This document shows, one piece after another, positions 12,378-53,618 of a stretch of DNA of 64,000 bases. The position numbers and the translations under genes were made by a program. Positions within the stretch are counted from its first letter, which is position 1. Each line of letters begins with the position of its first letter. Under the pieces are notes generated by a model, which was not told the origin of the DNA, did not search any database, and was given only the letters and a program-made list of their open reading frames with translations. The DNA is from Haliotis rubra (Eukaryota): positions 248,001-312,000 of the forward strand of contig NW_025767346.1 of the NCBI RefSeq assembly GCF_003918875.1, written 5' to 3'.

Positions 12378-12408
<31 letters not shown>

Positions 12409-13780: not shown

Positions 13781-13815
13781 AGCTGTGAAAGCAGTAACAA
13801 TAGATGTTAAAGTAC

Positions 13816-19783: not shown

Positions 19784-19846
19784 CTACACCAGTCAGCCCT
19801 GCAAACCACACATTGCCTGACTTAAAGAGAGAAAACACCAGAAGTC

Positions 19847-20079
19847 ATGGACCATCAAAAGCGACGGCTTCAGGCGCAGATAAAGGACAATTTACAGAAG
19901 ATTGGACGGCGACTAAATGGACGACCTATGACTGTGGCTTTTATTGGAACCATTGGAGTTGGCAAGTCTTCCCTAATCAACACCATCGCGACGGCCATGG
20001 GCACCGGATTTTGGCAGCAACACGCTTACACTGGAGGCCACGGGGGTCAGGCTGACCCGGTCACGGCAGTCATCAGAAG
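19847..20079 (+). CDS. IFI44-like: IFI44-like GTPase 1, exon 1 (G1, G2). Model: 19847-20079, 20832-21166, 30148-30506 = 308 aa
   Basis: VAFIGTIGVGKSSLINTI Walker A; AG|GTACGG donor, phase 2. All three exons join in frame (927 nt). Confidence 0.85.
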
Positions 20080-20099
20080 GTACGGCTCTATAATATAAG

Positions 20100-20133
20100 G
20101 ATCATCATCATTGTCATCGTCACGATCACAATG

Positions 20134-20184
<51 letters not shown>

Positions 20185-20400
20185 ACATCAACGTCAACAC
20201 CACCACCCTCTACCTCGACCTCCCTCTTTTCATCATGATCATAATCGTCATCATCATGATCATCATCATCATCATCATGATCACGATCGCAATCCTCCAA
20301 CCCGATCTCCTCCTTTTCATCACCACCACCACAACCATCATCATCATCATCATCATCATCGTCATCATCATCATCATCATCTCCGTGATCGCAGTCCCTC
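20100..20400. repeat. (CAT)n microsatellite in GTPase-1 intron 1
   Basis: Read directly. Confidence 0.9.
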
Positions 20401-20831
20401 AACTCGTCTTTTAATCATCATCGCCACAACCATCATCTTAATCATATAAACCACAATTCTCCGCCACCATCATCATCAAGTCTGTAATGATCAACGCCAT
20501 CACAGTCATCACCATCAGCATCCGCAAAGTATGAGAGACTTTGTTCAGGAAGTGTATTATAATCACCAAACTCTCCAAAACATAATATGGTAACTTGTGT
20601 TGTATTTGTACAATCTCAAAGCTGCAAGTTAATTGCATCAGGTATAACATAATCATAGTTTATATCTGTTTCCCAATGAAAGCCGTTTAGTTACTCATAC
20701 GCTAAATCTCATGACGTAAAGACTAAGAGGATGTACATGTAATTTGAGTGTAAAAATAGCTAACCAGTTTTTATTGCAGTTTCCATTCATTATCATGCTT
20801 CTGTCGTGTTGTACCCTGTGTATGTCCGTAG

Positions 20832-21166
20832 ATATCCACAATGTTGCCGACCGGAAGAGCATCGTAACCAGCTCTTCCCAACTCTAATGGACGTCCAGGG
20901 ACTTCCGGATCATCCTGACGCCATCTGGCGGGAGGCTCTGTCCCTTTTGTTCTATGGGCATATTCCCGAGGAAGCAAACCTGCACGACGTGGTAGACTAC
21001 CTACAGGCCAGGGATGACATACGGCGTCCGAGGTACATTCGAGGTCGCGACCGCCTGAAGGTGGACCGGGTTGTCGTTGTTGCCTCTGCCCAGGAACATT
21101 TACCCAAGGGTCTGCTTGAATCTGTTGTTAAGATTGCCAGGCCTGTTAGCGGACGCAGTCGAAGAG
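20832..21166 (+). CDS. IFI44-like: IFI44-like GTPase 1, exon 2 (G3)
   Basis: gtAG acceptor. YPQCC...PTLMDVQGL...LLFYGHIPE...LKVDRVVVVASA. G|GTTAGT donor. Confidence 0.85.
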
Positions 21167-21199
21167 GTTAGTGGCATGTTTTCCTGTGGATGAAGAAAT

Positions 21200-24100
21200 G
21201 ACATTATATGTAGCAGGAATGACATTGGATGTAGTATGAATGACACTGGATGTAGTATGAATGACACTGGATGTAGTATGAATGACACCGGATGTAGCAG
21301 GAATGACACTGGATGTAGTATGAATGACACCGGATGTAGTATGAATGACACTGTATGTAGTATGAATGGCACTGGATGTAGTATGAATGACACTGGATGT
21401 AGCAGGAATGACACCGGATGTAGTATGAATGACACTGGATGTAGTATGAATGACACTGGATGTAGTATGAATGACACTGGATGTAGTATGAATCACACTG
21501 GATGTAGCATGAATGACACTGGATGTAGTATGAATGACACCGGGTGTAGTATGAATGACACTGGATGTAGTATGAATGACACCGGGTGTAGTATGAATCA
21601 CACTGGATGTAGCAGGAATGACACTGGATGTAGTATGAATCGCACTGGGTGTAGTATGAATGACACTGGATGTAGTAGGAATGACACTGGATGTAGTATG
21701 AATCACACTGGATGTAACATGAATGACACCGGGTGGAGTATGAATGACACTGGATGTAGTATGAATGACACTGGATGTAGTATGAATCACACTGGATGTA
21801 ACATGAATGACACCGGTGTAGTATGAATGACACTGGATGTAGTATGAATGACACTGGATGTAGTATGAATCACACCGGGTGTAGTATGAATCACACTGGA
21901 TGTAGCAGGAATGACACTGGATGTAGTATGAATCACACTGGATGTAACATGAATGACACTGGGTGTAGCATGAATGACACTGGATGTAGTATGAATCACA
22001 CCGGGTGTAGTATGAATCACACTGGATGTAGCAGGAATGACACTGGATGTAGTATGAATCACACTGGATGTAGTATGAATCACACTGGATGTAGTATGAA
22101 TCACACCGGGTGTAGTATGAATCACACTGGATGTAGTAGGAATGACACTGGATGTAGGATGAATCACACTGGCTGTAGCAGGAATGACACTGGGTGTAGC
22201 ATGAATGACACTGGATGTAGTATGAATCACACCGGGTGTAGTATGAATCACACTGGATGTAGCAGGAATGACACTGGATGTAGTATGAATCACACTGGAT
22301 GTAACATGAATGACACTGGATGTAGTATGAATCACACCGGGTGTAGTATGAATCACACTGGATGTAGCAGGAATGACACTGGATGTAACATGAATCACAC
22401 TGGATGTAGCAGGAATGACACTGGATGTAGTATGAATCACACTGGATGTAACATGAATGACACTGGATGTAGTATGAATCACACCGGGTGTAGTATGAAT
22501 GACACTGGATGTAGCAGGAATGACACTGGATGTAGTATGAATCACACTGGATGTAGCATGAATGACACTGGATGTAGTATGAATGACACCGGGTGGAGTA
22601 TGAATGACACTGGATGTAGTATGAATCACACCGGGTGTAGTATGAATCACACTGGATGTAGCAGGAATGACACTGGACGTAGTATGAATGACACTGGGTG
22701 TAGTATGAATGACACTGGACGTAGTATGAATGACACTGGGTGTAGTATGAATGACCCTGGATGTAGTATGAATGACACTGGATGTAGTATGAATGACACC
22801 GGGTGTAGTATGAATCACACAGGATGTAGCAGGAATGACACTGGATGTAGTATGAATCACACTGGATGTAGCAGGAATGACACTGGGTGTAGTATGAATG
22901 ACACTGGATGTAGTATGAATCACACCGGGTGTAGTATGAATCACACTGGATGTAGTATGAATGACACTGGACGTAGTATGAATGACACTGGGTGTAGTAT
23001 GAATCACACCGGGTGTAGTATGAATCACACTGGATGTAGCAGGAATGACACTGGACGTAGTATGAATGACACTGGGTGTAGTATGAATGACACTGGACGT
23101 AGTATGAATGACACTGGATGTAGTATGAATGACACTGGATGTAGTATGAATCACACTGGATGTAGCATGAATGACACTGGATGTAGTATGAATGACACCG
23201 GGTGTAGTATGAATGACACTGGATGTAGTATGAATGACACCGGGTGTAGTATGAATCACACTGGATGTAGCAGGAATGACACTGGATGTAGTATGAATCG
23301 CACTGGGTGTAGTATGAATGACACTGGATGTAGTAGGAATGACACTGGATGTAGTATGAATCACACTGGATGTAACATGAATGACACCGGGTGGAGTATG
23401 AATGACACTGGATGTAGTATGAATCACACTGGATGTAGTATGAATCACACTGGATGTAACATGAATGACACCGGGTGGAGTATGAATGACACTGGATGTA
23501 GTATGAATGACACTGGATGTAGTATGAATCACACCGGGTGTAGTATGAATCACACTGGATGTAGCAGGAATGACACTGGATGTAGTATGAATCACACTGG
23601 ATGTAACATGAATGACACTGGGTGTAGCATGAATGACACTGGATGTAGTATGAATCACACCGGGTGTAGTATGAATCACACTGGATGTAGCAGGAATGAC
23701 ACTGGATGTAGTATGAATCACACTGGATGTAGTATGAATCACACTGGATGTAGTATGAATCACACCGGGTGTAGTATGAATCACACTGGATGTAGTAGGA
23801 ATGACACTGGATGTAGGATGAATCACACTGGCTGTAGCAGGAATGACACTGGGTGTAGCATGAATGACACTGGATGTAGTATGAATCACACCGGGTGTAG
23901 TATGAATCACACTGGATGTAGCAGGAATGACACTGGATGTAGTATGAATCACACTAGATGTAACATGAATGACACTGGATGTAGTATGAATCACACCGGG
24001 TGTAGTATGAATCACACTGGATGTAGCAGGAATGACACTGGATGTAACATGAATCACACTGGATGTAGCAGGAATGACACTGGATGTAGTATGAATCACA

Positions 24101-27100
24101 CTGGATGTAACATGAATGACACTGGATGTAGTATGAATGACACCGGGTGTAGTATGAATGACACTGGATGTAGCAGGAATGACACTGGATGTAGTATGAA
24201 TCACACTGGATGTAGCATGAATGACACTGGATGTAGTATGAATGACACCGGGTGGAGTATGAATGACACTGGATGTAGTATGAATCACACCGGGTGTAGT
24301 ATGAATCACACTGGATGTAGCAGGAATGACACTGGACGTAGTATGAATGACACTGGGTGTAGTATGAATGACACTGGACGTAGTATGAATGACACTGGGT
24401 GTAGTATGAATGACCCTGGATGTAGTATGAATGACACTGGATGTAGTATGAATGACACCGGGTGTAGTATGAATCACACAGGATGTAGCAGGAATGACAC
24501 TGGATGTAGTATGAATCACACTGGATGTACCATGAATGACACTGGATGTAGTATGAATGACACCGGGTGTAGTATGAATGACACCGGGTGTAGTATGAAT
24601 CACACTGGATGTAGCAGGAATGACACTGGGTGTAGTATGAATGACACTGGATGTAGTATGAATCACACCGGGTGTAGTATGAATCACACTGGATGTAGTA
24701 TGAATGACACTGGACGTAGTATGAATGACACTGGGTGTAGTATGAATCACACCGGGTGTAGTATGAATCACACTGGATGTAGCAGGAATGACACTGGACG
24801 TAGTATGAATGACACTGGGTGTAGTATGAATGACACTGGACGTAGTATGAATGACACTGGGTGTAGTATGAATGACATTGGATGTAGCAGGAATGCCACT
24901 GGACGTAGTATGAATGACACTGGGTGTAGTATGAATGACACTGGATGTAGTATGAATGACACCGGGTGTAGCAGGAATGACACTGGACGTAGTATGAATG
25001 ACACTGGGTGTAGTATGAATGACACTGGACGTAGTATGAATGACACTGGGTGTAGTATGAATGACATTGGATGTAGCAGGAATGCCACTGGACGTAGTAT
25101 GAATGACACCGGGTGTAGTATGAATGACACTGGATGTAGAATGAATCACACCGGGTGTAGTATGAATGACACTGGATGTAGTATGAATCACACTGGATGT
25201 AGTATGAATCACACTGGATGTAGTATGAATCACACCGGGTGTAGTATGAATCACACTGGATGTAGCAGGAATGACACTGGACGTAGTATGAATGACACTG
25301 GGTGTAGTATGAATGACACTGGACGTAGTATGAATGACACTGGGTGTAGTATGAATCACACTGGATGTAGCAGGAATGACACTGGACGTAGTATGAATGA
25401 CACTGGATGTAGTATGAATGACACTGGACGTAGTATGAATGGCACTGCGTGTACTATGAATGAAACTGGATGTAGCAGGAATGACACTGGACGTAGTATG
25501 AATGACACTGGGTGTAGTATGAATGACACTGGACGTAGTATGAATGACACTGGGTGTAGTATGAATCACACTGGATGTAGCAGGAATGACACTGGACGTA
25601 GTATGAATGACACTGGATGTAGTATGAATGACACTGGACGTAGTATGAATGGCACTGGGTGTAGTATGAATGACACTGGATGTAGTATGAATGACACTGG
25701 ATGTAGTATGAATCACACCGGGTGTAGTATGAATCACACTGGTTGTAGCAGGTATGACACTAGATGTAGTATATGAATCACACTGGATATAGCATGAATG
25801 ACACTGGATGTAGTATGAATGACACTGGGTGTAGTATGAATGACACTGGACGTAGTATGAATGACACTGGATGTAGTATGAATGACACTGGACGTAGTAT
25901 GAATGACACTGGACGTAGTATGAATGGCACTGGGTGTAGTATGAATCACACCGGGTGTAGTATGAATCACACTGGTTGTAGCAGGTATGACACTGGATGT
26001 AGTATGAATCACACTGGATATAGCATGAATGACACTGGATGTAGTATGAATGACACTGGGTGTAGTATGAATGACACTGGACGTAGTATGAATGGCACTG
26101 GGTGTAGTATGAATGACACTGGATGTAGTATGAATGGCACTGGGTGTAGTATGAATGACACTGGATGTAGTATGAATGACACTGGATGTAGTATGAATCA
26201 CACCGGGTGTAGTATGAATCACACTGGTTGTAGCAGGTATGACACTGGATGTAGTATGAATCACACTGGATATAGCATGAATGACACTGGATGTAGTATG
26301 AATGACACTGGGTGTAGTATGAATGACACTGGACGTAGTATGAATGACACTGGACGTAGTATGAATGACACTGGATGTAGTATGAATGACACTGGACGTA
26401 GTATGAATGGCACTGGGTGTAGTATGAATGACACTGGATGTAGTATGAATGACACTGGATGTAGTATGAATCACACCGGGTGTAGTATGAATCACACTGG
26501 TTGTAGCAGGTATGACACTGGATGTAGTATGAATCACACTGGATATAGCATGAATGACACTGGATGTAGTATGAATGACACTGGGTGTAGTATGAATGAC
26601 ACTGGACGTAGTATGAATGGCACTGGGTGTAGTATGAATGGCACTGGGTGTAGTATGAATGACACTGGATGTAGTATTAATCACACCGGGTGTAGTATGA
26701 ATCACACTGGATGTAGCAGGAATGACACTGGACGTAGTATGAATGACACTGGGTGTAGTATGAATGACACTGGACGTAGTATGAATGACACTGGGTGTAC
26801 CATGAATGACACTGGATGTAGTATGAATGACACCGGGTGTAGTATGAATGACACTGGATGTAGTATGAATGACACTGGATGTAGTATGAATCACACCGGG
26901 TGTAGTATGAATCACACTGGATGTAGCAGGAATGACACTGGACGTAGTATGAATGACACTGGGTGTAGTATGAATGACACTGGACGTAGTATGAATGACA
27001 CTGGGTGTAGTATGAATCACACTGGATGTAGCAGGAATGACACTGGACGTAGTATGAATGACACTGGATGTAGTATGAATGACACTGGACGTAGTATGAA

Positions 27101-30075
27101 TGGCACTGGGTGTAGTATGAATGACACTGGATGTAGTATGAATGACACTGGATGTAGTATGAATCACACCGGGTGTAGTATGAATCACACTGGTTGTAGC
27201 AGGTATGACACTGGATGTAGTATGAATCACACTGGATATAGCATGAATGACACTGGATGTAGTATGAATGACACTGGGTGTAGTATGAATGACACTGGAC
27301 GTAGTATGAATGACACTGGATGTAGTATGAATGACACTGGACGTAGTATGAATGACACTGGACGTAGTATGAATGGCACTGGGTGTAGTATGAATGACAC
27401 TGGATGTAGTATGAATGACACTGGATGTAGTATGAATCACACCGGGTGTAGTATGAATCACACTGGTTGTAGCAGGTATGACACTGGATGTAGTATGAAT
27501 CACACTGGATATAGCATGAATGACACTGGATGTAGTATGAATGACACTGGGTGTAGTATGAATGACACTGGACGTAGTATGAATGGCACTGGGTGTAGTA
27601 TGAATGACACTGGACGTAGTATGAATGGCACTAGGTGTAGTATGAATGACACTGGATGTAGTATGAATGACACTGGACGTAGTATGAATGACACTGGACG
27701 TAGTATGAATGACACTGGATGTAGTATGAATGACACTGGACGTAGTATGAATGGCACTGGGTGTAGTATGAATGACACTGGATGTAGTATGAATCACACT
27801 GGATGTAGTATGAATCACACCGGGTGTAGTATGAATCACACTGGTTGTAGCAGGTATGACACTGGATGTAGTATGAATCACACTGGATATAGCATGAATG
27901 ACACTGGATGTAGTATGAATGACACTGGGTGTAGTATGAATGACACTGGACGTAGTATGAATGGCACTGGGTGTAGTATGAATGGCACTGGGTGTAGTAT
28001 GAATGACACTGGATGTAGTATTAATCACACCGGGTGTAGTATGAATCACACTGGATGTAGCAGGAATGACACTGGACGTTAGTATGAATGACACTGGGTG
28101 TAGTATGAATGACACTGGACGTAGTATGAATGACACTGGGTGTAGTATGAATGACCCTGGATGTAGTATGAATGACACTGGATGTAGTATGAATGACACT
28201 GGATGTAGTATGAATCACACCGGGTGTAGTATGAATCACACTGGTTGTAGCAGGTATGACACTGGATGTAGTATGAATCACACTGGATGTAGTATGAATG
28301 ACACCGGGTGTAGTATTAATCACACTAGATGTAGTATGAATCACACCGGGTGTAGTATGAATGACACTGAATGTAGCAGGAATGACTCTGGATGTAGTAT
28401 GAATGACACTTGGTGTAGTATGAATGACACTGGACGTAGTATGAATGACACCGGGTGTAGTATGAATCACACTGGATGTAGCAGGAATGACACTGGGTGT
28501 AGTATGAATGACACTGGATGTAGCAAGAATGACACTGGATTTAGTATGAATGACACTGGATGTAGCAAGAATGACACTGGATGTAGTATGAATGACACTG
28601 GACGTAGTATGAATGACACTGGATGTAGCAAGAATGACACTGGATGTAGTATGAATGACACTGGACGTAGTATGAATGACACTGGGTGTAGTATGAATGA
28701 CACTGGATGTAGTATGAATGACACTGGGTGTAGTATGAATGACACTGGATGTAGCAAGAATGACACTGGATGTAGTATGAATGACACTGGACGTAGTATG
28801 AATGACACTGGGTGTAGTATGAATGACACTGGATGTAGTATGAATGACACTGGGTGTAGTATGAATGACACTGGGTTTAGAATGAATGACACTGGACGTA
28901 GTATGAGATGTAGTATGAATGACACTGGATGTAGCAGGAATGACACTGGATGTAGCAGGAATGACACTGGGTGTAGTATGAATGACACTGGGTGTTGTAT
29001 GAATGACACTGGGTGTAGTATGAATGACACTAGGTGTATTTTGAATGACACTGAGTGTAGTATGAATGACATTGGGTGTAGTATGAATGACACTTGGTGT
29101 AGTATGAATGACACTGGGTGTAGTATGAATGACATTGGGTGTAGTATGAATGACACTGGGTGTAGTATGAATGACACTGGGTGTAGTATGAATGACACTA
29201 GGTGTATTTTGAATGACACTTGGTGTAGTATGAATGACACTGGGTGTAGTATAAATGACACTGGGTGTAGTATGAATGACACTGGGTGTAATATGAATGA
29301 CACTGTGTGTAGAATGAATGACACTAGGTGTATTTTGAATGACACTGGGTGTAGTATGAATGACACTGGGTGTAGTATGAATGACACTAGGTGTAGTATG
29401 AATGACACTGGGTGTAGTATGAATGACACTGGGTGTAGTATGAATGACACTGGGTGTAGTATGAATGACACTTGGTGTAGCAGGAATGACACTGGCAGTA
29501 GTATGAATGACACTGGATGTAGCAGGAATGACACTGGGTGTAGCATGAATCACACTGGGTGTAGTATGAATGACACTGGATGTAGCAGGAATGACACTGG
29601 ATGTAGTATGAATCACACTGGATATAGCATGAATCACACTGGATGTAGTATGAATCACACCGGGTGTAGTATGAATCACACTGGATGTAGCAGGAATGAC
29701 ACTGGGTGTAGTATGAATGACACTGGATGTAGTATGAATGACAGTTGGTGTAGTATGAATGACACTGGATGTAGCAAGAATGACACTGGATGTAGTATGA
29801 ATGACACTGGACGTAGTATGAATGACACTGGGTGTAGTATGAATGACACTGGATGTAGTATGAATGACACTGGGTGTAGTAGGAATGACACTGGGTGTAG
29901 AATGAATGACACTGGACGTAGTATGAGATGTAGTATGAATGAAACTGGATGTAGCAGGAATGAAACTGGATGTAGCAGGAATGACACTGGGTGCTGTATG
30001 AATGACGCTGGATGTACTAGGAAAAACACTGAATGTTGTATGAATGACACGATATTTAGCAGTAATGACACATCC
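21200..30075. repeat. About 8.9-kb array of a 21-bp unit (GTAGTATGAATGACACTGGAT)n occupying GTPase-1 intron 2
   Basis: More than 400 tandem units; source of the 700-1300-aa pseudo-ORFs. Confidence 0.95.
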
Positions 30076-30147
30076 AACCATAGTTGGTTCCAGCCCGCAA
30101 AGAAACACATTTAGTTTCAATGTAACAGGATACTTTTTCCCCAACAG

Positions 30148-30506
30148 GCATTCCCATATTTGGAATCATGACAAAGACTGATCTCGTAGACCCTGATGTC
30201 GACCTCGACTACCTGCAGAGGGAGGAGAAGTTCAAAGATATCTTAGGTCTACATGGCACGCCACGCTTCCTCCGATGCATCAACTACTGCAGCGCCATCG
30301 ACCCCGACAACAACATGATCTTCACCAGCTACCCATACATCGACGTCCCAGTACTTCGTCTTATGACCCAGATCTGTGACCCAGCCATAGAAGTAGTTCA
30401 TCAGCAGGAACCCTACCCCTACCGGCAGCTAGCCAGGGAAAAGACCTGCTGGATCGTGATGGCTATCGTTGTAATCTTTCTGGCGTTTGTATTTATTTTA
30501 CGTTGA
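30148..30506 (+). CDS. IFI44-like: IFI44-like GTPase 1, exon 3 (G4, NY motif, C-terminal tail anchor)
   Basis: acAG acceptor, phase 1. GIPIFGIMTKTD...RFLRCINY...IDVPVLRLMTQI...WIVMAIVVIFLAFVFILR*. Confidence 0.85.
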
Positions 30507-30600
30507 ATGCTCTTTGATATTCATTTCGAGTTTATAGACACCGAACTTGTGGAAATTGTTTATGACAGACTGCTCAAAACATTGTATTACACGAGAAGGT

Positions 30601-38648: not shown

Positions 38649-38854
38649 TTATATTCTATGTTCTTTTACGATCTTCACAATTCGATCAATTTGTGACTGG
38701 TTGAATTTCTCAAACACGCTGAGCATGCGTTGGTCGTTGTCAAGGCGACGGAGTTCGGGATGATTCCTGATCGAGGTCAAGTTGCTGTTGTATAAAGTCC
38801 CGGGTGGCAGGGACCTCGAGCCGCCATCTCTGCTATATATTACTACGACATCAC
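38649..38854 (-). CDS. 2-TM gene C, exon 5 (C-half of the alpha/beta domain)
   Basis: tttcAG acceptor, phase 1. (G)DVVVIYSRDGGSRSLPPGTLYNSNLTSIRNHPELRRLDNDQRMLSVFEKFNQSQIDRIVKIVKEHRI*. Confidence 0.85.
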
Positions 38855-39293
38855 CTGAAACATAATCAAAAAATCCAGGGATTAGGAAGGGACAAAACTC
38901 TGCACAGCAACTTTCAGCTGCAAAATGACGAGTCACCATAAATATTCTATTCAAATTCATAATCGTCAGAGTGCGTGAGTTTTATTTTTACGTCACTTAT
39001 AGCAATATTCCAGCAATATCACGGCGGGGAACACCAGAAATGGGCCGCACACAAAACCATGTGGAGAATCGAACCCGGGTCTTCAGCGCGAACGCTTTAA
39101 CCACTAGACTACACCCACCGCTCCAGTAGTTAAGAAGGGCCTTACCGTTACGACAATCGTGTCTCCCATAGGTAACTAACTTAACTCACTCCTTCACATA
39201 CTCTTATCATCCGTATGTTTTCGTTACCAAATGAGAAACCATTTATTTTGGTCTAACAATGTTTGTAGTGGATTACAACAACAGTGTTCTCAC

Positions 39294-39609
39294 CTCCCAT
39301 TTTGCGGATAGCTTGTACTGTTGTAAGCCTGAGATCCCCCAGTCCTTTCGTGGGGTCCTCGAGGATGACATGCCTCTCGTTGAAATCCACAAACAGAAAG
39401 TAGACTTTACAAGGTGGAAGCCTTAAAATAAGCTCGTGCCCTTTGACGCAGTGCTTCGTGACAGTAATGTGTCTGGTGGCATCGTTCTGTGATAGGACAG
39501 CATCGACTTGGGTGTGGTGTTGGTTGATGGTGTCTGAATGGAAGCTGACCACACAAACACGGTTCTCAAGATGGCGGGGTGAAACGCTGTTCAAAATATT
39601 CTCGTCTCC
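39294..39609 (-). CDS. 2-TM gene C, exon 4 (N-half of the alpha/beta domain)
   Basis: ttctAG acceptor (phase 0) and GGAG|GTGAG donor. RVCVVSFH...KVYFLFVDFNERHVILEDPTKGLGDLRLTTV. Confidence 0.85.
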
Positions 39610-40928
39610 CTAGAAATACATCTTTTTGTTATGGGCTGTACCAAAATTAGAGTGAGTGAGTTTAGTTTTTAGCAATACCCCTGCAACGACGGAGGACACC
39701 AGACATGGGCTTCACAAATCGTGTCCACGTGGGGAATCGAACTCAGGTCTTTGGCGTGGCGAGCGAACGCATTAACCACTAGGCTACCCTTCCGCCCTGA
39801 ACCAAGACGTATTACTAGCAGCTCCAAATTAATGACCAATATAAATATATTTGGACGCGTCACTTTAGATCGCGCCCAAACCAGATTGAGCAGTGAGAAA
39901 GATTATAATGCAAATGATTGAGAATTGCTCCCCTTGAAACTTTTACGTCAAACCGTACATCACCCACGACACAGATGATTACGTTGAAACCGAGTAGTTA
40001 GTTTACAATTCAATTACCTATCGTTTGACACAAAACTGTTTGCACGCCATGGGCTAAAATTCGTGTGGACCTCAATTCGGGATTCCCAGTACATTAAGGT
40101 GTTTGGGGCTGGGCTTCTAGGGATCCCCAACCTTCACGTTGTTTCCAAAACCTATCTCGTTGCGTTTATTCTGTCCTTCAGCATATTGGCTGTATTATAA
40201 ACTGACTTATGAAGGAAAGTACACCACTAGTATTTAGGGAATATTTAAGAAAATACGGCGCAAAATATTTTGAGTTTAGTTTTACGTCGCACTCACCAAT
40301 ATTACAGCTATATGGAGGCGGTCTGTAAATAATCGAGTCTGGACCAGACAATCCAGTGATCAACAGCATAAACATCGATCTGCACAATGGCAGAACCGAT
40401 GACATGTGTCAACCAAGTCAGCGAGCCTGGCCACCCGATCACGTTAGACGCCTCTTACGACAAGCATGGGTTACTGAAGGAGCATTCACGGGTCCAAACT
40501 ATTTTGGACCGTGCTTTAGCGAGGAACATGAGGCGCTGGCAACCCTGCATATGGGTACGATATCCGTGATGTTTAAGCAACAGGCTCACAATGCCTGTGA
40601 TTCGTAAATCCCAAAGAAAACACGTTTCAAAATATTCTCATTTCTAATGGAAAATATTCCCAAAGCGTCAGGTGTTTATTTTCTTTTGTAAGTCAGGTTA
40701 TGGTCTTCTTTATAGTGAGTGAGTATGGTTTTACGCCGCTTTTAGCAATATTCCAGCAATATCACGGCGGGGGGACACTAGCAATAAGCTTCACACATTG
40801 TACCCATGTTGGGAATCGAGCCCAGATCATAGGCGTGACGATCGAACGCTCTAACCACTAGGCTACCCCGCCGCCCTTCTTCTTTATAAAAGCCGTATAT
40901 TTTCTGTTCTGTCTCAAACAAGGCATAC

Positions 40929-41104
40929 CCGAATGACGTCGTTATTAAGGCGTGGTTCCCCATTGGGGAGGCCTCGCCTTGCCCCTCCCCCTGGGCGCTC
41001 CCGCATGGTGGCTAGCACGTCAGTGAAGCTGGTCCACATCTTCCACACAGCAGCCATTGCCGCGATCTCTAGTATCCCCATCAACAAGATGAGGAAAATC
41101 CATT
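40929..41104 (-). CDS. 2-TM gene C, exon 3 (second TM helix)
   Basis: ttccAG acceptor (phase 1) and CGG|GTATGC donor (phase 0). (E)WIFLILLMGILEIAAMAAVWKMWTSFTDVLATMRERPGGG... Confidence 0.8.
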
Positions 41105-41602
41105 CTGGAACAGAATGTACACTTTTACAGTGAGTGAGCGAGTTTAGTTTTACGCCGCTTGTATCAGTATCCCAGTAATATCAAGGCGGCGGACACCAAA
41201 AATGGGCTTCACACATTGTACCAATGTGAGGAATCGAACCCGGGTCTTCAGCGTGACGAGTGGACGCTTTAACCACTAGGCTACCCCACCGCCGAGGTAC
41301 CCGACAGCCCCCCATCGCGTTTTAAGCCAATAAGGATGGGGAACGCGAAGTGATGAAGGTCTGACACGTTTACCATTCCTTGAAACAGGCACTGCTAAAA
41401 AAACGAGAAGCACAATCAAAGCCAAGATCACAGGTTTCTGGTACATCTAAGGGACATAACTCTGTATAACCGTAAAACAGCTGGACCTTTAGAATGGACC
41501 ACAAAATAAGAACTCTCGATTCTTAATTTTACTCAAGTTATTCTTTTCAGGACGTGCACCATAGCTTGCGAAGATTTAAAACATATACATGTATGTACCT
41601 AC

Positions 41603-41910
41603 CCTTAGACAAAAACTTGTTGGTGAGTTCTTCCATGCGACCGTCGAGGATGTAGCTTTTCAGTTCAACGTTGGAGTAGTTGCTGTACATGTCATCACGC
41701 ATAATCGTGATGTTGGCCTCTAACCACTTAATCTTTTCATTGTCTGCGACATTCTGCTTCAAGCACTGGTCCAGTGTCGTGGTCATTGTGTTCACCTGCT
41801 GATGCAGTGTGGTAGATGACGAGGTGTAGTCGTTGCTGTTCCTGACGTTCACAAAGGCGGGGGCAAAATACAGGGTGCCGAGTGTTCCCAAAATGCCGCC
41901 TGCTAATCCT
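41603..41910 (-). CDS. 2-TM gene C, exon 2 (end of TM1 + short coiled coil)
   Basis: ttttAG acceptor (phase 2) and AAGG|GTAGGT donor (phase 1). GLAGGILGTLGTLYFAPAFV...LDQCLKQNVADNEKIKWLEANI... Confidence 0.8.
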
Positions 41911-43486
41911 CTAAAAAAACAAGTGTTGATTGAAGAAGTCGGTGTCATTACGCCTCTTTAACAGGATTATATTAACATCAAGGTGTCTTGAGTTATTGAG
42001 TGAATGAATGAGTGCTTGAATGAGTGAGTTTAATTTTACGCCGCTTTTAGCAATATTCCAGCAACATCACGGCAGGGGACACCAGAAATGAGCTCAACAC
42101 GTTGTACCCAAATGAAGAATCGAACCAGGTCTTCGGCATCTTTGCGTGAGTGAGTGGTGAGTATATTTTAACGCCTCTTTTAGCAATATACCAGCAATAT
42201 CACGGCGGGGGATACCAGAAATGGGCTTCACACATTGTACCCATGTGGGGAATCGAACCCGGGTCTTCAGCGTGACGACCGAACGCTTTAACCACTAGGC
42301 TTCCCCACCGCCCGAGGAAAACCCGAAGCCACACACCATTGAGAATCAAAGACATCAGGGAGTGTGGGGTTCGAACCACTGTCAAAATAGCCTTGATTGA
42401 TTGATTGAGTTTTTATGCCATCTTTAGCAATATTCCAGCATTATCACACCACAAATTGTGAACATATATATTTTTTGTGTACATCTGTGGACCGGTGAAG
42501 GTCCGGGTTAGAATTGATCTTCAGCAACCCATGATAGTTGTAAAAGACGGATCGGGTTAGCTGATCTGGTTGACACGCAGCATCGTATCCCAGTTGTATA
42601 GTTCGACGCTCATGCTGTTAATCACTGGAGTATCTGGTCCAGACCATTATTTGGAGGACGTCGTAATATAGCCGGAATATTGCTGAGTGCGGCGTAAAAC
42701 AACAAACCAACTTAGCAAAATTTTACAATGTTAGTATAAGAGTAGGACATGCATGCATACATACATGCATGCATGCATGCATGCATACATACATACACAC
42801 ACACACACACATTCCCATCCTTACGAGGTACCCATTCTCAGCTGGGTGGACTGGGACACATAGTCACAGTACTTTGTCCAAGCTTACTGCACGTTGCTGT
42901 ACCCGCAACTGGGTGTTTGCACGTATTCATGTGGCCACCATCTGGTCATATACCAACGGATTCGTGGGTTCTTCTAAGTGCACAGGGTTGTGTACTGTAC
43001 ACTAGGGGTTGTGGCAACACTGAAAGAGTCTGCACACATAGTTGACTTCAAGGTTTTTACACCCGGTCACAGGTGGGCTCGATCCCGTCACCTCAAGCTC
43101 GCTGGATCACTAGCCTGGCGCTTTAGCCAGCTCGCCCACCGCGCCCCCACCGATTCCCCCGGAGCCAGGGGAGGTCACTCTATTTTGACTGTCAGCCAGA
43201 CAACACAACATAGGATCCCTGAAATTTCACGACGTTGTACCAAATCATTTATTCATGTATTTGTCCAAAATATGATCATCACTCACACGCATAAAAATGC
43301 ATATTTCAGACATTCCAAATTTCTTCAAAACTGTTGACCCATACTACGATATTAAATATATTTTCTTATCAAAGCCTTTACAATCTAGATCCACAACGAA
43401 AAGTTGGTCTGTTCGTTTGTCTTGTAAACCAGAGATAAAACTATAGCAATGTCAGCAAATAGTGACAAGGAAATTTGCCCAAACAG

Positions 43487-43593
43487 GGCACCGTTCGACA
43501 AAGCGATCGTAGCGCTAAGGTGATCGTAACTCCCATACTTTAACATAGACTTACGACAGTCGTAGCGCTGCAATCGCTTTGAGGAACGGGGCC
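43487..43593. mobile_element. Palindromic MITE with CWG flanks (Harbinger-like)
   Basis: GGCACCGTTCGACAAAGCGAT...ATCGCTTTGAGGAACGGGGCC; a related partial copy lies at about 8590-8670. Confidence 0.55.
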
Positions 43594-44640
43594 CTGGATG
43601 ACATTTACACAGGTTTCACAGTGACACATGTGCCACGAAAATTCATTTGTAAGAAATGAAAATAGAAAGGGGTTGATATACAGCCTTGCCAAGCACCAAG
43701 TCCCATCTGTAATGTTTCAAATAATTCTCTCTTGATTCTTAACAACTGCCAATATGTTACTCCACATTTAAGCTATAATATACGTAAGACTTTTTGGAAT
43801 AACTTACTTCTCATTTAATGAATCAAAAACATGTAAAACCGACAAACAATTTCTAAACTAAATCTTTGCGTGAGTGAGTGGTGAGTTTAGTTTTACACCT
43901 CTTTTAGCAATATACCAGCAATATCATGGCGGGGGATACCAGAAATGGGCTTCACACATTGTACCCATGTGGGGAATCGAACCCGGGTCTTCAGCGTGAC
44001 GACCGAACGCTGTAACCACTGGGCTACCCCGCCGCCCCTCTTTGAATGGGAGAAGCCAGAAGAAGAAGTTAAGCAGCACATATATCGAAGAAAATGTGTT
44101 ATCTATCTGTCGTATCTGTCTCGTCAAAGAAATACAGTTTACGCACTGGACGAGACATTACGGGAATATGTGAGGAAACAAATTCTGTCTAAGGCCATGA
44201 TGTTTGTTAAGCAGAGTAACGTCCCTTGGACACCATGACCGTTGGTTCGAATCCTATACTCGCCCTGGTTATGATCACTGTCAGCACTGCAGGTTCACGT
44301 ACTTGGTTTACCAAGGCAATATGTGTCAACCCTACTGTCCTAAACATTTAGAGTGAGTGAATATGGTTTACTTTAGCCTTTAGCTATAATTCTGCAATAT
44401 CCAAGATAGCATTCGGACGTTGGCCCAACGTTGGCAATGTGGGCAAAACCATTGCCAACGTTGGGCCAACGTCTGAATGCTATCTGGGATCGCGGCGGGG
44501 GCACCAGAAATGGGCTTCACACATTGTACCCATAATGGGACTCCAACCCGGGTCTTCGGTGTGACGAGCGAACGCTTTACCAACTAGACTACCCCGCTGT
44601 AAAAGATGTAAAAAGGATTACAACGAGACTAGATACTTAC

Positions 44641-45335
44641 GTGGCTGTAGACATTGCACATATGAAAAATAAGGGATCCTGTAAAACACGTTGGAACTTT
44701 GGCTGGTGGTTAGCTTGTAGCGCGTCAGTTCCGGGGATATCAGCCGCAGGATCTCTCTTGGTCACTGTAGTCTCTCTGTCAGGCGGTGCCCAATCTGGCT
44801 TTGCGTGTGTTTGTGATCCCTTAGTGCCGGGGGTATCTGCTGAAGTTTCTCTGTTGGTCACTGTGGTCTCTCTGTCAAGCGTTGTCGAATCTTGCTCTGC
44901 CTGTATTTGTGATCCCTTGCCTCCGTGTGTATGTGCCACAGGATCGCCGTTGGTCACTGTGGTCTCTCTGTCAAGCGTTGTCGTATCTTGCTCTGCGTGT
45001 ATTTGTGATCCCTTGCCTCCGTGTGTCTGTGCCACAGGAGGCCGTGCCGGATCTGGCTTTGCGTGTGTTACTGACCCTTCAGTAATGGAAGGCTCTGCGC
45101 CAGAGGACGCGTTTGCTTCTGTCCTCTCCTCACAGATACACTTGCTCGTCGTTTTGTCTTCTCGTAACCCTGTCTCTTTCAAATCGGCCGTTGCGTTACC
45201 GCCCGATGTATATTTATGCCCGACAACGTTTGTCTCCCTTTCATTTCCAGCCAGACCTCCAGTTAGGGTTGATTCATGTCCCGAACTTACTTCGCCTGTC
45301 ATCAGTGACGAGTTGTCCTGGTCCCTAGACGCCAT
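44641..45335 (-). CDS. 2-TM gene C, exon 1 (repetitive T/E/D-rich cytoplasmic tail). Model: 45335-44641, 41910-41603, 41104-40929, 39609-39294, 38854-38649 = 566 aa
   Basis: ATG at 45335; AC|GTAAGT donor, phase 2. All five exons join in frame (1701 nt). Confidence 0.8.
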
Positions 45336-46355: not shown

Positions 46356-46526
46356 NNNNNNNNNNNNNNNNNNNNNNNNNNNNNNNNNNNNNNNNNNNNN
46401 NNNNNNNNNNNNNNNNNNNNNNNNNNNNNNNNNNNNNNNNNNNNNNNNNNNNNNNNNNNNNNNNNNNNNNNNNNNNNNNNNNNNNNNNNNNNNNNNNNNN
46501 NNNNNNNNNNNNNNNNNNNNNNNNNN
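46356..46526. other. Assembly gap (N run)
   Basis: Ns in the sequence. Confidence 1.
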
Positions 46527-48862: not shown

Positions 48863-49802
48863 ACTAATGATAAAGTCTTTATCTTTCCAGTTACCATTGT
48901 CCTTACTTTCAATTGAGTATCAGATTCACTTTTAACAACATTAAATATAGGTTCAATCTTAATTACATCTAATTTACATAGAATTTAGCTATAGTGAAGC
49001 CACAGTTGACAGGATTTGGTTCAAGTACCTGATTACTCAAAACACAAACCGAAAAATGCCAAACATGCTCCTGGTGTTTATAATTGTTTGTTTGTTTGTT
49101 TATTAAGATCACACTCAGCAATATTCCATAGATATAGGTCGTTTAGCCCAAGTTGTTTACAATTCTCGTCCTATGGGGGCGGTGGGGTAGCCTAGTGGTT
49201 AAAGCGTTGGCTCGTCACGCCGAAGACCCGGGTTCGAATCCCCACATGGGTACAATGTGTGAAGCCCATTTCTGGTGTCCCCCGCCGTGATGTTGCTGGA
49301 ATATTGCTAAAAGCGGCGTAAAACTAAACTCAGTCAGTCTCGTCCTATGACGTGTGACGAGTGAATTGGTTTTACGCCCCATTTACAATAACCTAACAAT
49401 ATCACGGCGGGGCACACCAGAAATTGGATTCACACATTGAACCCATGTGGGAAATCGAACCGGGCCATTGGCATGACGAGCGAACGCTTTAACCACTAGG
49501 CTACCCTACTGCCCCCTCGACCTAACAATACGCCCAAAATGTAAAACCTGAAAAACAGTGTCATGTATATCTACGCTTTTTTTAACCTTGTTATGATTTT
49601 TCCCTTGTCGATGATATTTTGTTATGTAGTGTAAATAATACTATATATAGGTAAATGCAAATCATTATTTGAACCCGTATCGAAATAAGTAAATTACATA
49701 AAATAAATGAAGACAAAATTATTGTTTCAAAAGACAGTGACGTGAATGAAGGACGTACAATAAGTGTAGCAGGAACTTTCAATGTATATTTCAGAATTCC
49801 AA

Positions 49803-49992
49803 ATGGATGACATTGATCGCGAATCCTTCTCCGTCTTGAGCCAAGACTCGGACGCCGAGACGGACATCCAGGAAGGGGACTGGACGCCAGACTTCCAGAA
49901 AAACCAGAAGAGATTGAGCCTCATCAGGAGGATACGGAAACATTGTGGAAAGGATGACGGCATCACCAAGCCTCTCAATGTTGTAGTTATAG
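49803..49992 (+). CDS. IFI44-like: IFI44-like GTPase 2, exon 1. Model: 49803-49992, 50773-50905, 51832-52172, 52888-53618 = 464 aa
   Basis: tttcAG acceptor ending at 49794; ATG at 49803; ...KPLNVVVIG|GTCAGT, phase 1. The exons join in frame (1395 nt). Confidence 0.8.
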
Positions 49993-50772
49993 GTCAGTAT
50001 TGATTTTGGCGGTGGGGTAGCTCAGTGGTTACAGCGTTCGCTTGTCACGCCAAAGTCCGGGTTGGATTCCACACATGGGTACAATGTGTGAAACCTATTT
50101 CTGGTGTCACCCGCCATGATATTGCTCGAATTTTGCCAACGTCGGCGTAAAACTATACTCACCAAATCTGTATTGATATAAATCCTGTCCTTCATGACAA
50201 GAAACGCGGAGTTGTAGAGTCGCTTCCCTTAGACGTTACAGAATCCTAGATCCAATTCTTTGGGTAATACTCCATTGCTTCCTTTATGGGAAGTCGATGG
50301 GTAGCCCGGTGGTTAAGGCGTTCGTTCTTCACGCCGAATACCCGGGTTCGATTCCCCACGTGGATACAATGTGTGAAACCAACTTCTGGTGTCGATTGCT
50401 GTGATGTTGTTGGAATAAAAGCGGCCTAAAACCTAACACACTCACTCCGTTTGTGTACACGAAGTGACCTAACACTTAACACTATATAACCCAACTCACA
50501 ACCCGTGAAGGTCCGGGTTAGAACTGGTCTTCATCAACCCATGCTTGTCGTAAGAGGCGACTAACGGGTGGTTAGGCTCGCTGGCCTGGATGACACATGT
50601 CATCGTATCCCAATTGCGTAGATCAATGCTCATGCTGTTGATCACTGGGTTGTTTGGTCAAGACTCGATTATTTACAATCCGCCGCCATGTAGCTGGAAT
50701 ATTGCTGAGTGCAGCCACAACAACAACAAAACCAAACTCACTTACTCACTCACTTTGTGTCTCTTTCTCCAG

Positions 50773-50905
50773 GGCCTGCTGGAGTTGGCAAGTCGGCGTT
50801 CATCAACACCGTCGGAGCAGCGTTTGATGGTGTCTGCTGGCGGGAACACAGCTACTCAGGGTCCCACGACAAAGCAGGAGATCAGATCACGGTATTCACT
50901 ACAAG
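50773..50905 (+). CDS. IFI44-like: IFI44-like GTPase 2, exon 2 (G1, G2)
   Basis: ctccAG acceptor. GPAGVGKSAFINTV...DQITVFTT. AG|GTAGG donor. Confidence 0.85.
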
Positions 50906-51831
50906 GTAGGATGCATGGTGAAGCCTCTTGAACTCGAGTGAGTTTACGTCGCTTTTAATAAAAACCCATCAAATTCACGGCGGGGAACCAGTAAATATAT
51001 AGGTTTACACGTTGTACCTTTGTAGGAAGTCGTACTGAGTCTTCAGCAACTAGAACTCGAAGCACATAAGTCGAATTATCCGAAGCATCACAGCTGCCAT
51101 TGTTGGGCCACACTGTCAAAAATAAACCTACGGGTATTTTAAAGCTCGAGTGAAGAGGTTTGCCCCCTTTTGCCCGCCAGGGTTCAATGATAGTTGGTCA
51201 AAAGCCTAGATTCCCTAATTACACGCCACTATTGCATGGCTTTGTTGATACTTCGTCGTTCGTCGCAGTCACTGCAGAAACGGTGCCATTTTAAACCTGA
51301 CATAGTGCCTAGGAGATAGTTTCTCTTGGCGCAAAGATAAGAAATTGGGTGGTTCTCACAAACACGTGCACAGAAGGCCCATTGGACACCTGTTATTGTT
51401 TCACTCCATTTCATTATCTGAGGGGTCGTTAGGGTAGTCCAGTTCGATCGTCATGCCAAAGACCCGGGTTCGATTCCCGAATTGGGTACAATGTGTGAAA
51501 CCTATTTCTGGTGTCCCGCAGCGTCATGTTGATGGTATATTGCTAAAAGCGGTGTAAAACAATACCCACTCACTATAGTCTACATTACTGAAGATCAATT
51601 CTAACCCGGGTTTCATGGGTTGTGAATATTCCAGTCATAGTGTTAACCCGGACTTTCACGGGTGGATTAAGCATTAATGGTTTCCATAAAATTGCTCTGA
51701 CACGTGTGTCATATCTACCAAACTCGAATAAACATTTACATATTACCTGGGAAATGTTCGAATCCTAAAACTAATAATGTCGATGTCAAACTTCCTTGGC
51801 ATGGTAACGTGAAACGTGTTTCGTTTGCTAG

Positions 51832-52172
51832 CTATGAAAAGTGCTGCAATGCCCAAAAGTACCCGGATGATCTGTTGCCAACACTCATCGATGTCGCTGG
51901 ATTCCACGACGAGGCGAGTGATAAGTTTGTGGAACTACTTCGCATTGTGTTCTACGGTCGACTTCCGGTGGGCGAATCACTAGCGGAAGCGGAGAGGTAC
52001 TACAACGACTGTGGATTGGAGGGACTCCGGTCAAAATACAACCAAAACAATGAGAAGCTGAAGGTTGACCGGGTCATCTTCCTGTCCTCAGCCACCCAGG
52101 ACTTCCCAGAGAACCTCATCTCGTGTGTGATTCAGGCAGCCAGACCGTCGGGCATCTATGACAAGAAAAGAA
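51832..52172 (+). CDS. IFI44-like: IFI44-like GTPase 2, exon 3 (G3)
   Basis: YEKCC...PTLIDVAGF...IVFYGRLP...LKVDRVIFLSSA. A|GTGAG donor. Confidence 0.85.
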
Positions 52173-52887
52173 GTGAGCAGTAGTTTTAAAAGGGATCCAG
52201 GCAGAATTGGTCACAGTACGTCATTGATGGTAGTACGATTAGTTTGTTGTTTAACGCCGCACTCAGCAATATTCCAGCTATATGGCGGCGGTCTGTAAAT
52301 AATCGAGTCTGGACCAGACAATCCAGTGATCAACAGCAGGAGCATCGGTCTACGCCGATACGTTGACATTTGTCATTCAAGTCAGCGAGCCTTACCACCC
52401 GGTCCCGTTAGTCGTCTCTTACGATCAGAATGGGTTACTGAAGATAAATTCTAACCCGGATCTTCACGGGTATCACGGTAAAGACTTGCTTCACTTACTC
52501 AATGCTCCAGATTTGCCTTAATTGTGTTTCAAGGGACCTTTGGGGGAATATGTTTCAGTATCATACCAATAAATAAGTTTCGAGAAGGCGGCTAATAGCA
52601 AATGCCTTCATCACTTCGACTGTCATCCCAAATGGAGCACTGAATGAGTGAATATGGTTTTACGCACATTTAGCAATATTCCGGCAACACAACGGAGGGG
52701 AGATAAAAAAAAGGGCCTCCCACGTGGGAAATCGAACCCGGGTCTTCGGCGTCACGACCAAACGCTTTAACCACTAGGCAACCCCACCGTCCCCGAATGG
52801 AGAAGATACTCCATGATATGATTAAAATACTCTGATATTGAAACAACATCTCTCATTCACTAATCAATACGACATTTTTTCTTTCAG

Positions 52888-53618
52888 CAATTCCTTTGTT
52901 CGGCGTCATGACGAAATATGACAAGGTGATCCCACAGGAAGAGTTTAAAAAACTGGAGGGAAAATCTGCCAATATTGACGTCATCGGGCACGAAGACTAT
53001 GCCGAGCGAGAGAGTAAGTTCATCAAGGCATTGGGTCTTGGGGGATCCAAACACCGGTTCCTCCGCTGCTCTAACTACTGCGATGACACAGACAAAGACA
53101 ACACGCGCATAGAGACCGTCATCCCTGACCTTGACCTTCCCGTGCTGAAATTCTTCACCCAGGTCAGTGACCCAGTGATGCAAGTGCTGAACAAGGGTGA
53201 GACCTACTCTCAAGGAATCGCACCTGAAACAATTCCAGTACAGGAAGCTGCGACCCCGACGCAAACGCCCGCACAGAAAGGCGGGACTGAAGTCAAAGGG
53301 AGCAAAATGGGCATCGTTGAAAATTTTGGAGAGACTGGTGTTTCGGTTCTGTTGATAACAATCGAGGCGATCTTTGTGGCGTTTTTCCTGTCCCTCCTTT
53401 TGAAGCCGCAGGTGGACGTCAACAAGGTGAAGGTCGCTTGTCAGTTTATGTCTGACCGGAAGACACCCCACGCCCAGGCCGGGATGACCGACATATGCAA
53501 GGCCGTGAGCGACTCGGATGTCTGGGCTGGTTTCACGTTCTATCTTGCACTTTTGATACTGATTGTCATAAGAGTAGCGTCGACGCTTTTCACCATAAAT
53601 ATCTTTAGACGAAACTGA
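52888..53618 (+). CDS. IFI44-like: IFI44-like GTPase 2, exon 4 (G4, NY motif, two C-terminal TM helices)
   Basis: IPLFGVMTKYD...RFLRCSNY...VSVLLITIEAIFVAFFLSLLL...WAGFTFYLALLILIVIRVASTLFTI. Confidence 0.85.

Follow-up and report, generated by a model that had tools for sequence, protein, structure and literature searches.

A 64,000-nucleotide stretch of the Haliotis rubra genome (contig NW_025767346.1, positions 248,001 to 312,000; hereafter the window) carries three related genes, A, B and C, in which a sequence-only reading had seen an unrecognised receptor family. This raises the questions of whether the exons for a helical stalk and for an alpha/beta domain belong to one gene, and what kind of protein such a gene encodes.

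Gene C is transcribed from five exons

Gene C is a real and transcribed gene. Its exons 45335-44641, 41910-41603, 41104-40929, 39609-39294 and 38854-38652 form one open frame, with the stop codon extending to 38649, canonical GT/AG splice sites and intron phases of 2, 1, 0 and 1.

38649-45335, minus strand: gene C, five exons with GT/AG sites, 566 aa
44641-45335, minus strand: exon 1, start codon and 221-aa Ser/Thr/acidic tail; end phase 2
41603-41910, minus strand: exon 2, remainder of the first hydrophobic helix, TM1 (41910-41850), and stalk; end phase 1
40929-41104, minus strand: exon 3, second hydrophobic helix, TM2 (41102-41034), and juxtamembrane linker; end phase 0
39294-39609, minus strand: exon 4, initial 105 aa of the alpha/beta domain at the C-terminus, with strands 1-3; end phase 1
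38649-38854, minus strand: exon 5, remaining 68 aa of the domain with strands 4-5 and helices; stop codon

The exon 1 tail contains a 96-nt (32-aa) repeat in 3.1 copies at 44743-45039. From 44672, this exon also encodes the initial third of TM1. Exon 3 was assigned to 41104-40929 because this segment leads from phase 1 to phase 0, matches the TM2 exon of B and is used in transcripts. Another TM-like open reading frame, at 41446-41279, was rejected since its phase does not fit that of exon 2.

The four introns are identical to those of RefSeq LOC124256810 isoform X2 (P0010, 504 aa), which differs from our model solely within the exon 1 repeat. All four junctions were also present in spliced contigs from four public runs (X1-X4), which carry the label 'RNA?', their RNA origin being a guess. 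The contig joints 38854/39294, 41104/41603 and 41910/44641 all showed CT..AC on the plus strand, and record 1 of run X1 (1253 nt) passed in one contig from exon 2 through exons 3 and 4 and beyond. Single contigs from runs X1-X4 thus unite the stalk, TM2 and domain exons, and the proposed exon models and phases, as well as the assignment of stalk and alpha/beta exons to one gene, are confirmed. That these exons stem from different genes and were combined by an artefact of gene modelling is scarcely credible: exons 2, 3, 4 and 5 are joined in single contigs at GT/AG boundaries, unlike genomic DNA, the RefSeq structure is the same, and the same order recurs in about 50 homologues from many molluscs. 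We found no support for such an artefact, the sole caveat being the guessed run label.

Helices, stalk and predicted topology

In the gene C product, a repeat-rich tail is followed by TM1 (residues 222-252, Kyte-Doolittle peak 1.68), a heptad stalk, TM2 (residues 336-358, peak 2.44) and a C-terminal domain of 173 aa. TM1 is rich in Gly, Ala and Thr and only moderately hydrophobic. The stalk (41849-41604, residues 253-334) contains two sequons and one Cys, and TM2 is followed by a basic, Arg/Gly-rich linker (residues 359-393). Compared with shuffled sequences, the heptad pattern of the stalk gave a z score of 3.8 in C and 13.5 in B, with control regions close to 0. The two hydrophobic peaks and the heptad signal in C support the postulated order of tail, TM1, helical stalk, TM2 and alpha/beta domain.

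Across 50 family members, the sequon density was 2.09 per 100 aa between the helices compared with 0.57 in the domain, a 3.7-fold difference, and the number of Lys and Arg residues was higher on the predicted cytosolic flanks (109 versus 74, and 127 versus 98). Because of this distribution of sequons and basic residues, a topology with the stalk outside the cytosol and the C-terminal domain inside is favoured. Of the double-anchored stalk with a signalling domain suggested earlier, the architecture stands, and signalling is a putative role of the domain.

The C-terminal domain

The structure model of the domain (pLDDT 96.3, pTM 0.92) consists of five beta/alpha units, which predicts a flavodoxin-like fold for this presumably cytosolic domain of approximately 170 aa; in the secondary-structure string of the model, strands 2 and 3 are linked by a helix. 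Such a generic fold gives no hint of an activity. Exon 4 of gene C encodes the conserved block F-V-D-F-N-E-R...G-D-L-R. E86 in the loop after strand 3 is conserved to 88%. Together with D117, S120, Y129, R150, S153 and Q162, it would form part of a polar surface, likewise conserved, along the sheet's C-terminal edge. Among B-type genes, the domain shows 80-90% identity compared with 46-69% for the stalk and is the slower-evolving part. To judge from the alignments, the predicted cytosolic domain, and not the stalk, forms the conserved core of the family.

Searches of Pfam, PADLOC and PDB profiles yielded no consistent family match for the domain. In a Pfam scan of 78 domain sequences at E<=10, 29 families gave any match, none of them in more than three members; 25 of these 29 families included no TIR family, and the profile search against PDB returned no TIR chain. 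PAE2307 was rejected as the domain family since the match was too weak (E 0.34). A feature search of the ESM Atlas led to chordate clusters and DUF4630 with scores of 0.85-0.90, below the trust level of the tool; in a literature search, DUF4630 was mentioned in no paper, and it is retained as no more than a tentative lead. The residues after strand 1 are S-F-H-S-D-T in gene C and T-F-H-T-E-T in paralogue B; they form no Gly-rich loop, and both a Walker A motif (GxxxxGK[ST]) at this position and a G4 motif ([NT]KxD) are absent from the domain. An origin of the domain from the neighbouring GTPase, described below, was discarded at an hhalign probability of 0.6%.

Range and variation of the family

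At E<=1e-3, HMMER searches returned 196 clusters; of 30 that were sampled, 26 bear a name, and each of these 26 is a mollusc protein annotated as uncharacterised. By these matches the family appears to be mollusc-wide rather than abalone-specific, and wider than the three genes in the window. C (P0010) and B (P0001) both aligned to the A2/A4 profile by which the family is defined, with a TM helix about 24 aa upstream of the domain; across the family, the median distance from the end of TM2 to the start of the domain is 24 aa. Two hydrophobic peaks upstream of the domain were found in 50 of the 78 members, preceded in about 39 of these by an N-terminal tail, and the complete tail-TM-stalk-TM-domain plan is kept by about half of the members. 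The stalk can be as short as about 60 aa or as long as about 750 aa. The double anchor is not universal, because the N-terminal helix of 11 members, probably including B, resembles a signal peptide and about 25 members have only one TM helix. Abalones possess just three paralogues.

Gene identifiers, locus and accession terms and TIR-DC terms retrieved no description of the family from paper texts. With no Pfam, PADLOC or PDB sequence match and with its identifiers in none of the paper texts searched, the family can be called unrecognised, as had been claimed. Probably, it represents an unnamed and undescribed type of receptor or adaptor with a likely immune role.

Paralogues A and B

8786-16738, minus strand: paralogue B (795 aa), equal to RefSeq P0001
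16705-15028, minus strand: coding exon of B, signal peptide or TM1 and 535-aa sequon-bearing, predicted glycosylated helical stalk
13955-13816, minus strand: coding exon of B, TM2
9741-9420 and 9033-8789, minus strand: coding exons of B, C-terminal domain
1-5657, minus strand: paralogue A (RefSeq P0002, 903 aa), stalk exons; extends beyond the window start

B contains 16 N-glycosylation sequons, in line with the earlier estimate of about 16, and every one lies between the two helices (residues 201-515). The exon phases of B had been described as matching those of C. This is correct for the last three introns (1, 0, 1), but the first intron is absent from B, which has just these three because its coding sequence begins in the stalk exon. 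With its start at residue 8 and with S-W-G and then I-P after it, the N-terminal helix of B resembles a cleavable signal peptide; probably it is cleaved rather than serving as TM1, an option that the sequence-only reading had fairly allowed for. The large intron of B contains a low-complexity repeat and an N run (9780-9910); a second N run in the window is located at 46356-46526. In A, two segments that precede the RefSeq start (5537-5283 and 4429-4316) resemble the tail and TM1 of H. asinina P0005. This gene is complicated and continues past the window start, and its model was rightly given as partial.

Neighbouring GTPase genes

49782-53618, plus strand: P-loop GTPase gene, head-to-head with gene C
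about 19.9-30.5 kb, plus strand: GTPase paralogue, head-to-head with B

The neighbour of gene C encodes G-P-A-G-V-G-K-S at about 50.78 kb and hydrophobic anchors at the C-terminus. A P-loop GTPase gene adjoins a family member at five loci, which represent the genera Haliotis, Magallana, Mya and Solemya, with homologous neighbours in H. rubra (twice), H. asinina, Magallana gigas, Mya arenaria and Solemya velum; the pairing is head-to-head in Haliotis, Mya and Solemya. The GTPase matches in Mya (E 3e-5) and Solemya (E 1.5e-7, comprising the P-loop exon only) are short. At four of nine loci examined (Mytilus, both Biomphalaria assemblies and Ostrea) there was no called gene within 10 kb, and the Pecten locus has neighbours other than the GTPase. 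In oysters, IFI44 responds to OsHV-1 infection (PMC4198667).

Proposed function

We give about an even chance to the explanation that A, B and C are members of a family of membrane glycoproteins, mollusc-wide and so far undescribed, which act as receptors or adaptors in an innate immune setting. The conserved part would consist of a TM helix that a linker of about 24 aa connects to the flavodoxin-like cytosolic domain of about 170 aa. Upstream of it, a variable, glycosylated, heptad-patterned stalk would lie outside the cytosol; its far end would usually be closed by another TM helix with a disordered tail in the cytosol, and in some members by a cleaved signal peptide instead. The stalk might be a sensing or oligomerising element, whose state the cytosolic domain would relay by assembling partners via its conserved polar surface. 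The likeliest partner would be the membrane-anchored IFI44-like GTPase encoded alongside, and the setting would be innate, probably antiviral, immunity. Topology, signalling, GTPase partner and immune role are all points that we infer. Several observations speak against this explanation: abalones have just three paralogues, where large expansions are typical of mollusc immune receptors; TM1 of C is only moderately hydrophobic; the fold is generic; four loci have no called neighbour and Pecten has different ones; and the GTPase matches in Mya and Solemya are short.

Molluscs lack interferon, and to our knowledge neither partners nor mechanisms are known for the IFI44-like genes of oysters that respond to virus. 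A mollusc-wide family found repeatedly beside an IFI44-like GTPase gene, often sharing the promoter region, therefore provides a testable candidate receptor or adaptor upstream of, or together with, such GTPases, with relevance for the herpesvirus disease of abalone and oysters in aquaculture. Its well-folded domain of about 170 aa is, in addition, a domain family missing from current domain databases. A more far-reaching version, which we put forward tentatively as somewhat doubtful, is a two-gene innate module older than the split between bivalves and gastropods, in which a double-anchored, glycosylated helical sensor and a membrane-anchored IFI44-like GTPase, encoded by a divergently transcribed gene, act together. 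The cytosolic domain of the sensor would then be new, TIR-like or pseudo-GTPase-like, and the joint action could be, for example, the sensing or restriction of enveloped viruses at membranes.

Alternative explanations and comparison with known systems

The sequence-only reading had likened the stalk to tetherin and to class A scavenger receptors. As in BST2/tetherin, a helical, glycosylated extracellular rod would be held in the membrane at both ends behind a cytosolic N-terminal tail. A rod fixed in this way could hold budding enveloped virions while the cytosolic domain reports their capture, which would agree with the two anchors around a sequon-bearing stalk, with the single Cys in the stalk of C, which could link dimers, and with the adjacent GTPase, of a type that is virus-responsive in oysters. 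However, the second anchor of tetherin is GPI and no C-terminal cytosolic domain follows, whereas here a TM helix precedes a region of 230 aa predicted to be cytosolic; in C, the 208 residues after the second helix include the folded domain and do not form a GPI-type ending. The tetherin ectodomain is a parallel, disulfide-linked dimer of coiled coils; the stalk of C shows a heptad pattern and one Cys. The BST2 Pfam profile matched neither P0010, P0004 and P0006 (E<=1) nor the exon translations, and no sequence relationship to tetherin was found. Furthermore, the core of the mollusc family is the predicted cytosolic domain, the stalk is its least conserved part in B-type genes and is unconstrained in length, and the members with signal-peptide-like starts or a single TM helix would lack the double anchor. 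Such a tether is thus quite improbable. Class A scavenger receptors are type II proteins with a single TM helix, their coiled coil being followed by a collagenous domain, an SRCR domain or both; Pfam gave no match to collagen or SRCR, and the C-terminus is predicted to be cytosolic. Both likenesses are analogies only.

A very divergent TIR domain, placing the family in a TLR-like class that acts by TIR-TIR assembly or by NAD+ cleavage via the Glu after strand 3, appears unlikely. TIR domains have five parallel strands in the order 2-1-3-4-5, and those of the NADase class a catalytic Glu and a BB-loop; in the present domain, five beta/alpha units are predicted and E86 is a candidate for that Glu. 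Compared with TIR receptors and adaptors (TLR/IL-1R, SARM1, plant and bacterial TIRs), the 78 members gave no TIR match among the 25 Pfam families listed, two TM helices enclose a helical stalk as the ectodomain in place of LRR or Ig, and the likeness to the TIR fold is not specific, GTPase and REC folds matching equally well. We rate as equally unlikely a non-immune housekeeping protein of membrane organisation or trafficking, whose domain would be a nucleotide-free, pseudo-GTPase-like module comparable to CENP-M or IRGQ. Against this reading, P-loop and NKxD motifs are absent. Unlike CENP-M, IRGQ and TRAFAC G-domains, the domain has neither G1 nor G4 motif, has five strands only and shows no profile similarity to the adjacent GTPase, and the hairpin by which G-domains connect strands 2 and 3 is replaced by a helix in its model. 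A range confined to molluscs would also be unusual for core cell biology.

In its layout, the proposed receptor or adaptor also resembles bacterial two-TM sensors such as methyl-accepting chemotaxis proteins and sensor kinases, which have TM1, an extracytoplasmic helical domain, TM2 and a cytosolic output. Unlike these, it has no HAMP, kinase or MCP signalling domain, is eukaryotic and is predicted to be N-glycosylated, so that this likeness, too, is one of analogy. Weak coiled-coil-type Pfam matches in the stalk were to MCPsignal, EzrA and apolipoprotein.

Gene C is expressed as a single spliced unit

Gene C (LOC124256810) was rebuilt from the raw sequence as five coding exons:

45335-44641, minus strand, exon 1
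41910-41603, minus strand, exon 2
41104-40929, minus strand, exon 3
39609-39294, minus strand, exon 4
38854-38652, stop to 38649, minus strand, exon 5

GT/AG sites bound every intron, and the reading frame, with phases 2,1,0,1, encodes 566 aa, exactly as the sequence-only reading had modelled it. A hydrophobic ORF at 41446-41279 was ruled out as an exon, being out of phase. The four introns are identical in RefSeq isoform X2 (P0010, 504 aa), whose sole difference lies inside a 96-nt repeat (3.1 copies, 44743-45039) in the exon 1 tail. The 62 aa of this repeat absent from X2 could reflect alternative splicing or a repeat mapping artefact.

In contigs from four public runs of one study, guessed to be RNA, we found the joints 38854/39294, 41104/41603 and 41910/44641, all CT..AC on the plus strand, and single contigs run from exon 2 through exons 3 and 4 and beyond. 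Since these joints excise precisely the predicted introns, they show spliced transcripts. RefSeq and the contigs thereby support the gene model independently of each other. Stalk and alpha/beta exons thus lie in one gene, and their assignment to separate genes was not upheld.

Architecture of C and its paralogues

The gene C product is organized as follows:

Residues 1-221, Ser/Thr/acidic tail with a 32-aa repeat (3.1 copies)
Residues 222-252, first hydrophobic helix (TM1), Kyte-Doolittle peak 1.68
Residues 253-334, stalk without Pro and with a single Gly
Residues 336-358, second, stronger helix (TM2), Kyte-Doolittle peak 2.44
Residues 359-393, basic Arg/Gly linker
Residues 394-566, C-terminal domain

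By a simple score, heptad periodicity of the stalk exceeded that of shuffled sequences by 3.8 standard deviations in C and by 13.5 in paralogue B, tail and C-terminal domain scoring about 0. The proposed tail-TM-stalk-TM-domain architecture is real.

Paralogue B is RefSeq P0001 (795 aa), and its stalk exon is 100% identical to RefSeq proteins of the blacklip abalone, Haliotis rubra, the species of the window. The RefSeq label 'BRE1-like' is an artefact of the coiled coil. B is coded by four exons:

16705-15028, minus strand
13955-13816, minus strand
9741-9420, minus strand
9033-8789, minus strand

The claim of matching phases 2,1,0,1 was borne out for C; what B has in common with C is its last three intron phases (1,0,1). 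The approximately 16 glycosylation sites claimed for the coiled coil of B were recovered as 16 N-x-S/T sequons, all at residues 201-515 between both helices and none in the C-terminal domain. The large intron of B holds a purine-rich low-complexity stretch (10431-13620), strongly skewed in both GC (up to 0.63) and AT and adjoining an assembly gap at 9780-9910.

Paralogue A (P0002) extends beyond the window edge and begins in RefSeq at 3609. Upstream of this start, an N-terminal tail and the beginning of a TM1-plus-stalk segment (5283-5657 and 3761-4444, minus strand) resemble the proteins P0005 of H. asinina and P0006 of H. rufescens. In RefSeq, A may be modelled too short, or duplicated stalk segments may have been fused in it.

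A molluscan family defined by its TM-linker-domain unit

A word-index search returned Haliotis proteins only, three per species. With HMMER and the Haliotis domain profile, a single iteration over 1.84 billion representatives yielded 196 clusters at E<=1e-3 (117 at E<=1e-10). Thirty were looked up; the source was unnamed in four, and each named one was an uncharacterised or hypothetical mollusc protein. On this sampling, members occur in bivalves (Solemya, Mytilus, Pecten, Magallana/Crassostrea, Saccostrea, Ostrea, Mya, Mactra, Sinanodonta, Potamilus, Tegillarca, Pinctada, Ruditapes) and gastropods (Haliotis, Physella, Biomphalaria, Babylonia, Gigantopelta). Domain libraries gave no match and the searched paper texts no description, so that the family is unnamed, as had been supposed.

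Among 78 near-complete members, the median spacing from the end of a hydrophobic helix to the domain is 24 aa. A second, further-upstream helix is present in 50 members; about 39 of these carry an N-terminal tail before it, and in 11 it lies at the very N-terminus and is signal-peptide-like. The two helices are between about 60 and about 750 aa apart. Between species, B-type genes are 80-90% identical in the domain versus 46-69% in the stalk; C-type genes reach about 83% in either part and 50% in the tail. The family is defined by the TM-linker-domain unit, with stalk and outer anchor variable.

Sequons per 100 aa numbered 2.09 between the helices, 1.17 in the tail, 0.77 in the linker and 0.57 in the domain. 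Lys plus Arg favoured the tail side of TM1 (109 versus 74) and the domain side of TM2 (127 versus 98). Statistically, these are the signatures expected of a protein with N-terminus in, stalk out and C-terminus in. The placement of the coiled coil outside and the C-terminal domain inside is accordingly favoured as a predicted topology.

Fold and possible identity of the C-terminal domain

AlphaFold gave a mediocre domain model from 11 Haliotis sequences only (pLDDT 71) and a very confident one from the 78 members (pLDDT 96.3, pTM 0.92), with five strand-helix units. Conserved positions (numbered on P0010:330-504) are F25, E86, T99, Y114, D117, S120, L123, Y129, L142, L145, R150, S153 and Q162, and an F-V-D-F-N-E-R...G-D-L-R block is likewise conserved. 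Read from the secondary-structure string, the polar residues among the conserved ones would lie at C-terminal strand ends or in the ensuing loops and helix starts. In folds of this type, function usually resides at that edge.

Structure searches with the model gave no specific relative: other TIRs scored 8.1-8.8, REC domains about 8.2-8.6, and flavodoxins were among the Foldseek and Atlas matches. A P-loop following strand 1 and an NKxD motif are absent, and profile comparison was negative for kinship with the neighbouring GTPase. At E<=10, no Pfam family matched the 78 domain sequences consistently and TIR was absent among the families listed; neither PADLOC nor PDB sequence profiles gave a match. 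A divergent TIR would be the most attractive specific identity, yet we do not file the domain as a TIR because it does not pass the sequence-profile test and G-domain folds match its structure equally well.

Because the TM-linker-domain unit is constant while stalk and outer anchor vary, we favour a receptor or adaptor whose predicted cytosolic domain serves as effector or assembly surface. A tetherin-like mechanical role of the double-anchored stalk is given low weight.

Adjacency to P-loop GTPase genes

In the window, B and C each lie head-to-head with a P-loop GTPase gene encoding C-terminal hydrophobic anchors:

19700-30510, plus strand, GTPase gene head-to-head with B
49782-53618, plus strand, GTPase gene head-to-head with C

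In H. asinina, the C orthologue is head-to-head with the same GTPase gene as in the window, at 656 bp between called genes, and the second GTPase comes next, tail-to-tail. In Magallana gigas, the gene immediately upstream of a family member, in tandem, carries Pfam IIGP and resembles the abalone GTPases in its last exon (36% over 91 aa, E 2e-8). Head-to-head neighbours in Mya arenaria (at 822 bp; middle exon, E 3e-5) and Solemya velum (P-loop exon, E 1.5e-7) also match. The Mytilus, Biomphalaria and Ostrea loci are without a called gene inside 10 kb, and the Pecten neighbours are an OTU/Mab-21 and an Ig/FN3 protein. The upstream one in Pecten maximus (1320 aa) has OTU and C-terminal Mab-21 (cGAS-like) domains, of immune flavour.

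The two genes are neighbours at five loci from four genera, among them the deepest bivalve branch and a basal gastropod. Chance hardly explains this, and a functional pair is suggested; the two genes may form a conserved module. The window GTPases had been called 'IFI44-like', and for oyster IFI44 a response to OsHV-1 infection has been reported (PMC4198667). That response is the family's only, indirect, link to immunity.

In the first GTPase gene, the interval from the middle exons to the last one holds about 9 kb of short-period tandem repeat (21146-30144; e.g. T-S-S-V-I-H-T-T-P-G-V-I-H units). The repeat is open in several frames, both strands having ORFs of up to 1316 aa, and may be either a satellite within an intron or a mucin-like exon. 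Many window introns carry a SINE-like repeat (e.g. 39000-39130, 40780-40860, 42200-42300, 43930-44080, 44480-44580) translating as ...G-S-L-V-V-K-A-F-x-R-H-A-E-D-P-G-S-I-P-H-M-G-T-M-C-E-A-H-F-W..., which is extremely abundant in contigs, where word depth reaches the thousands.
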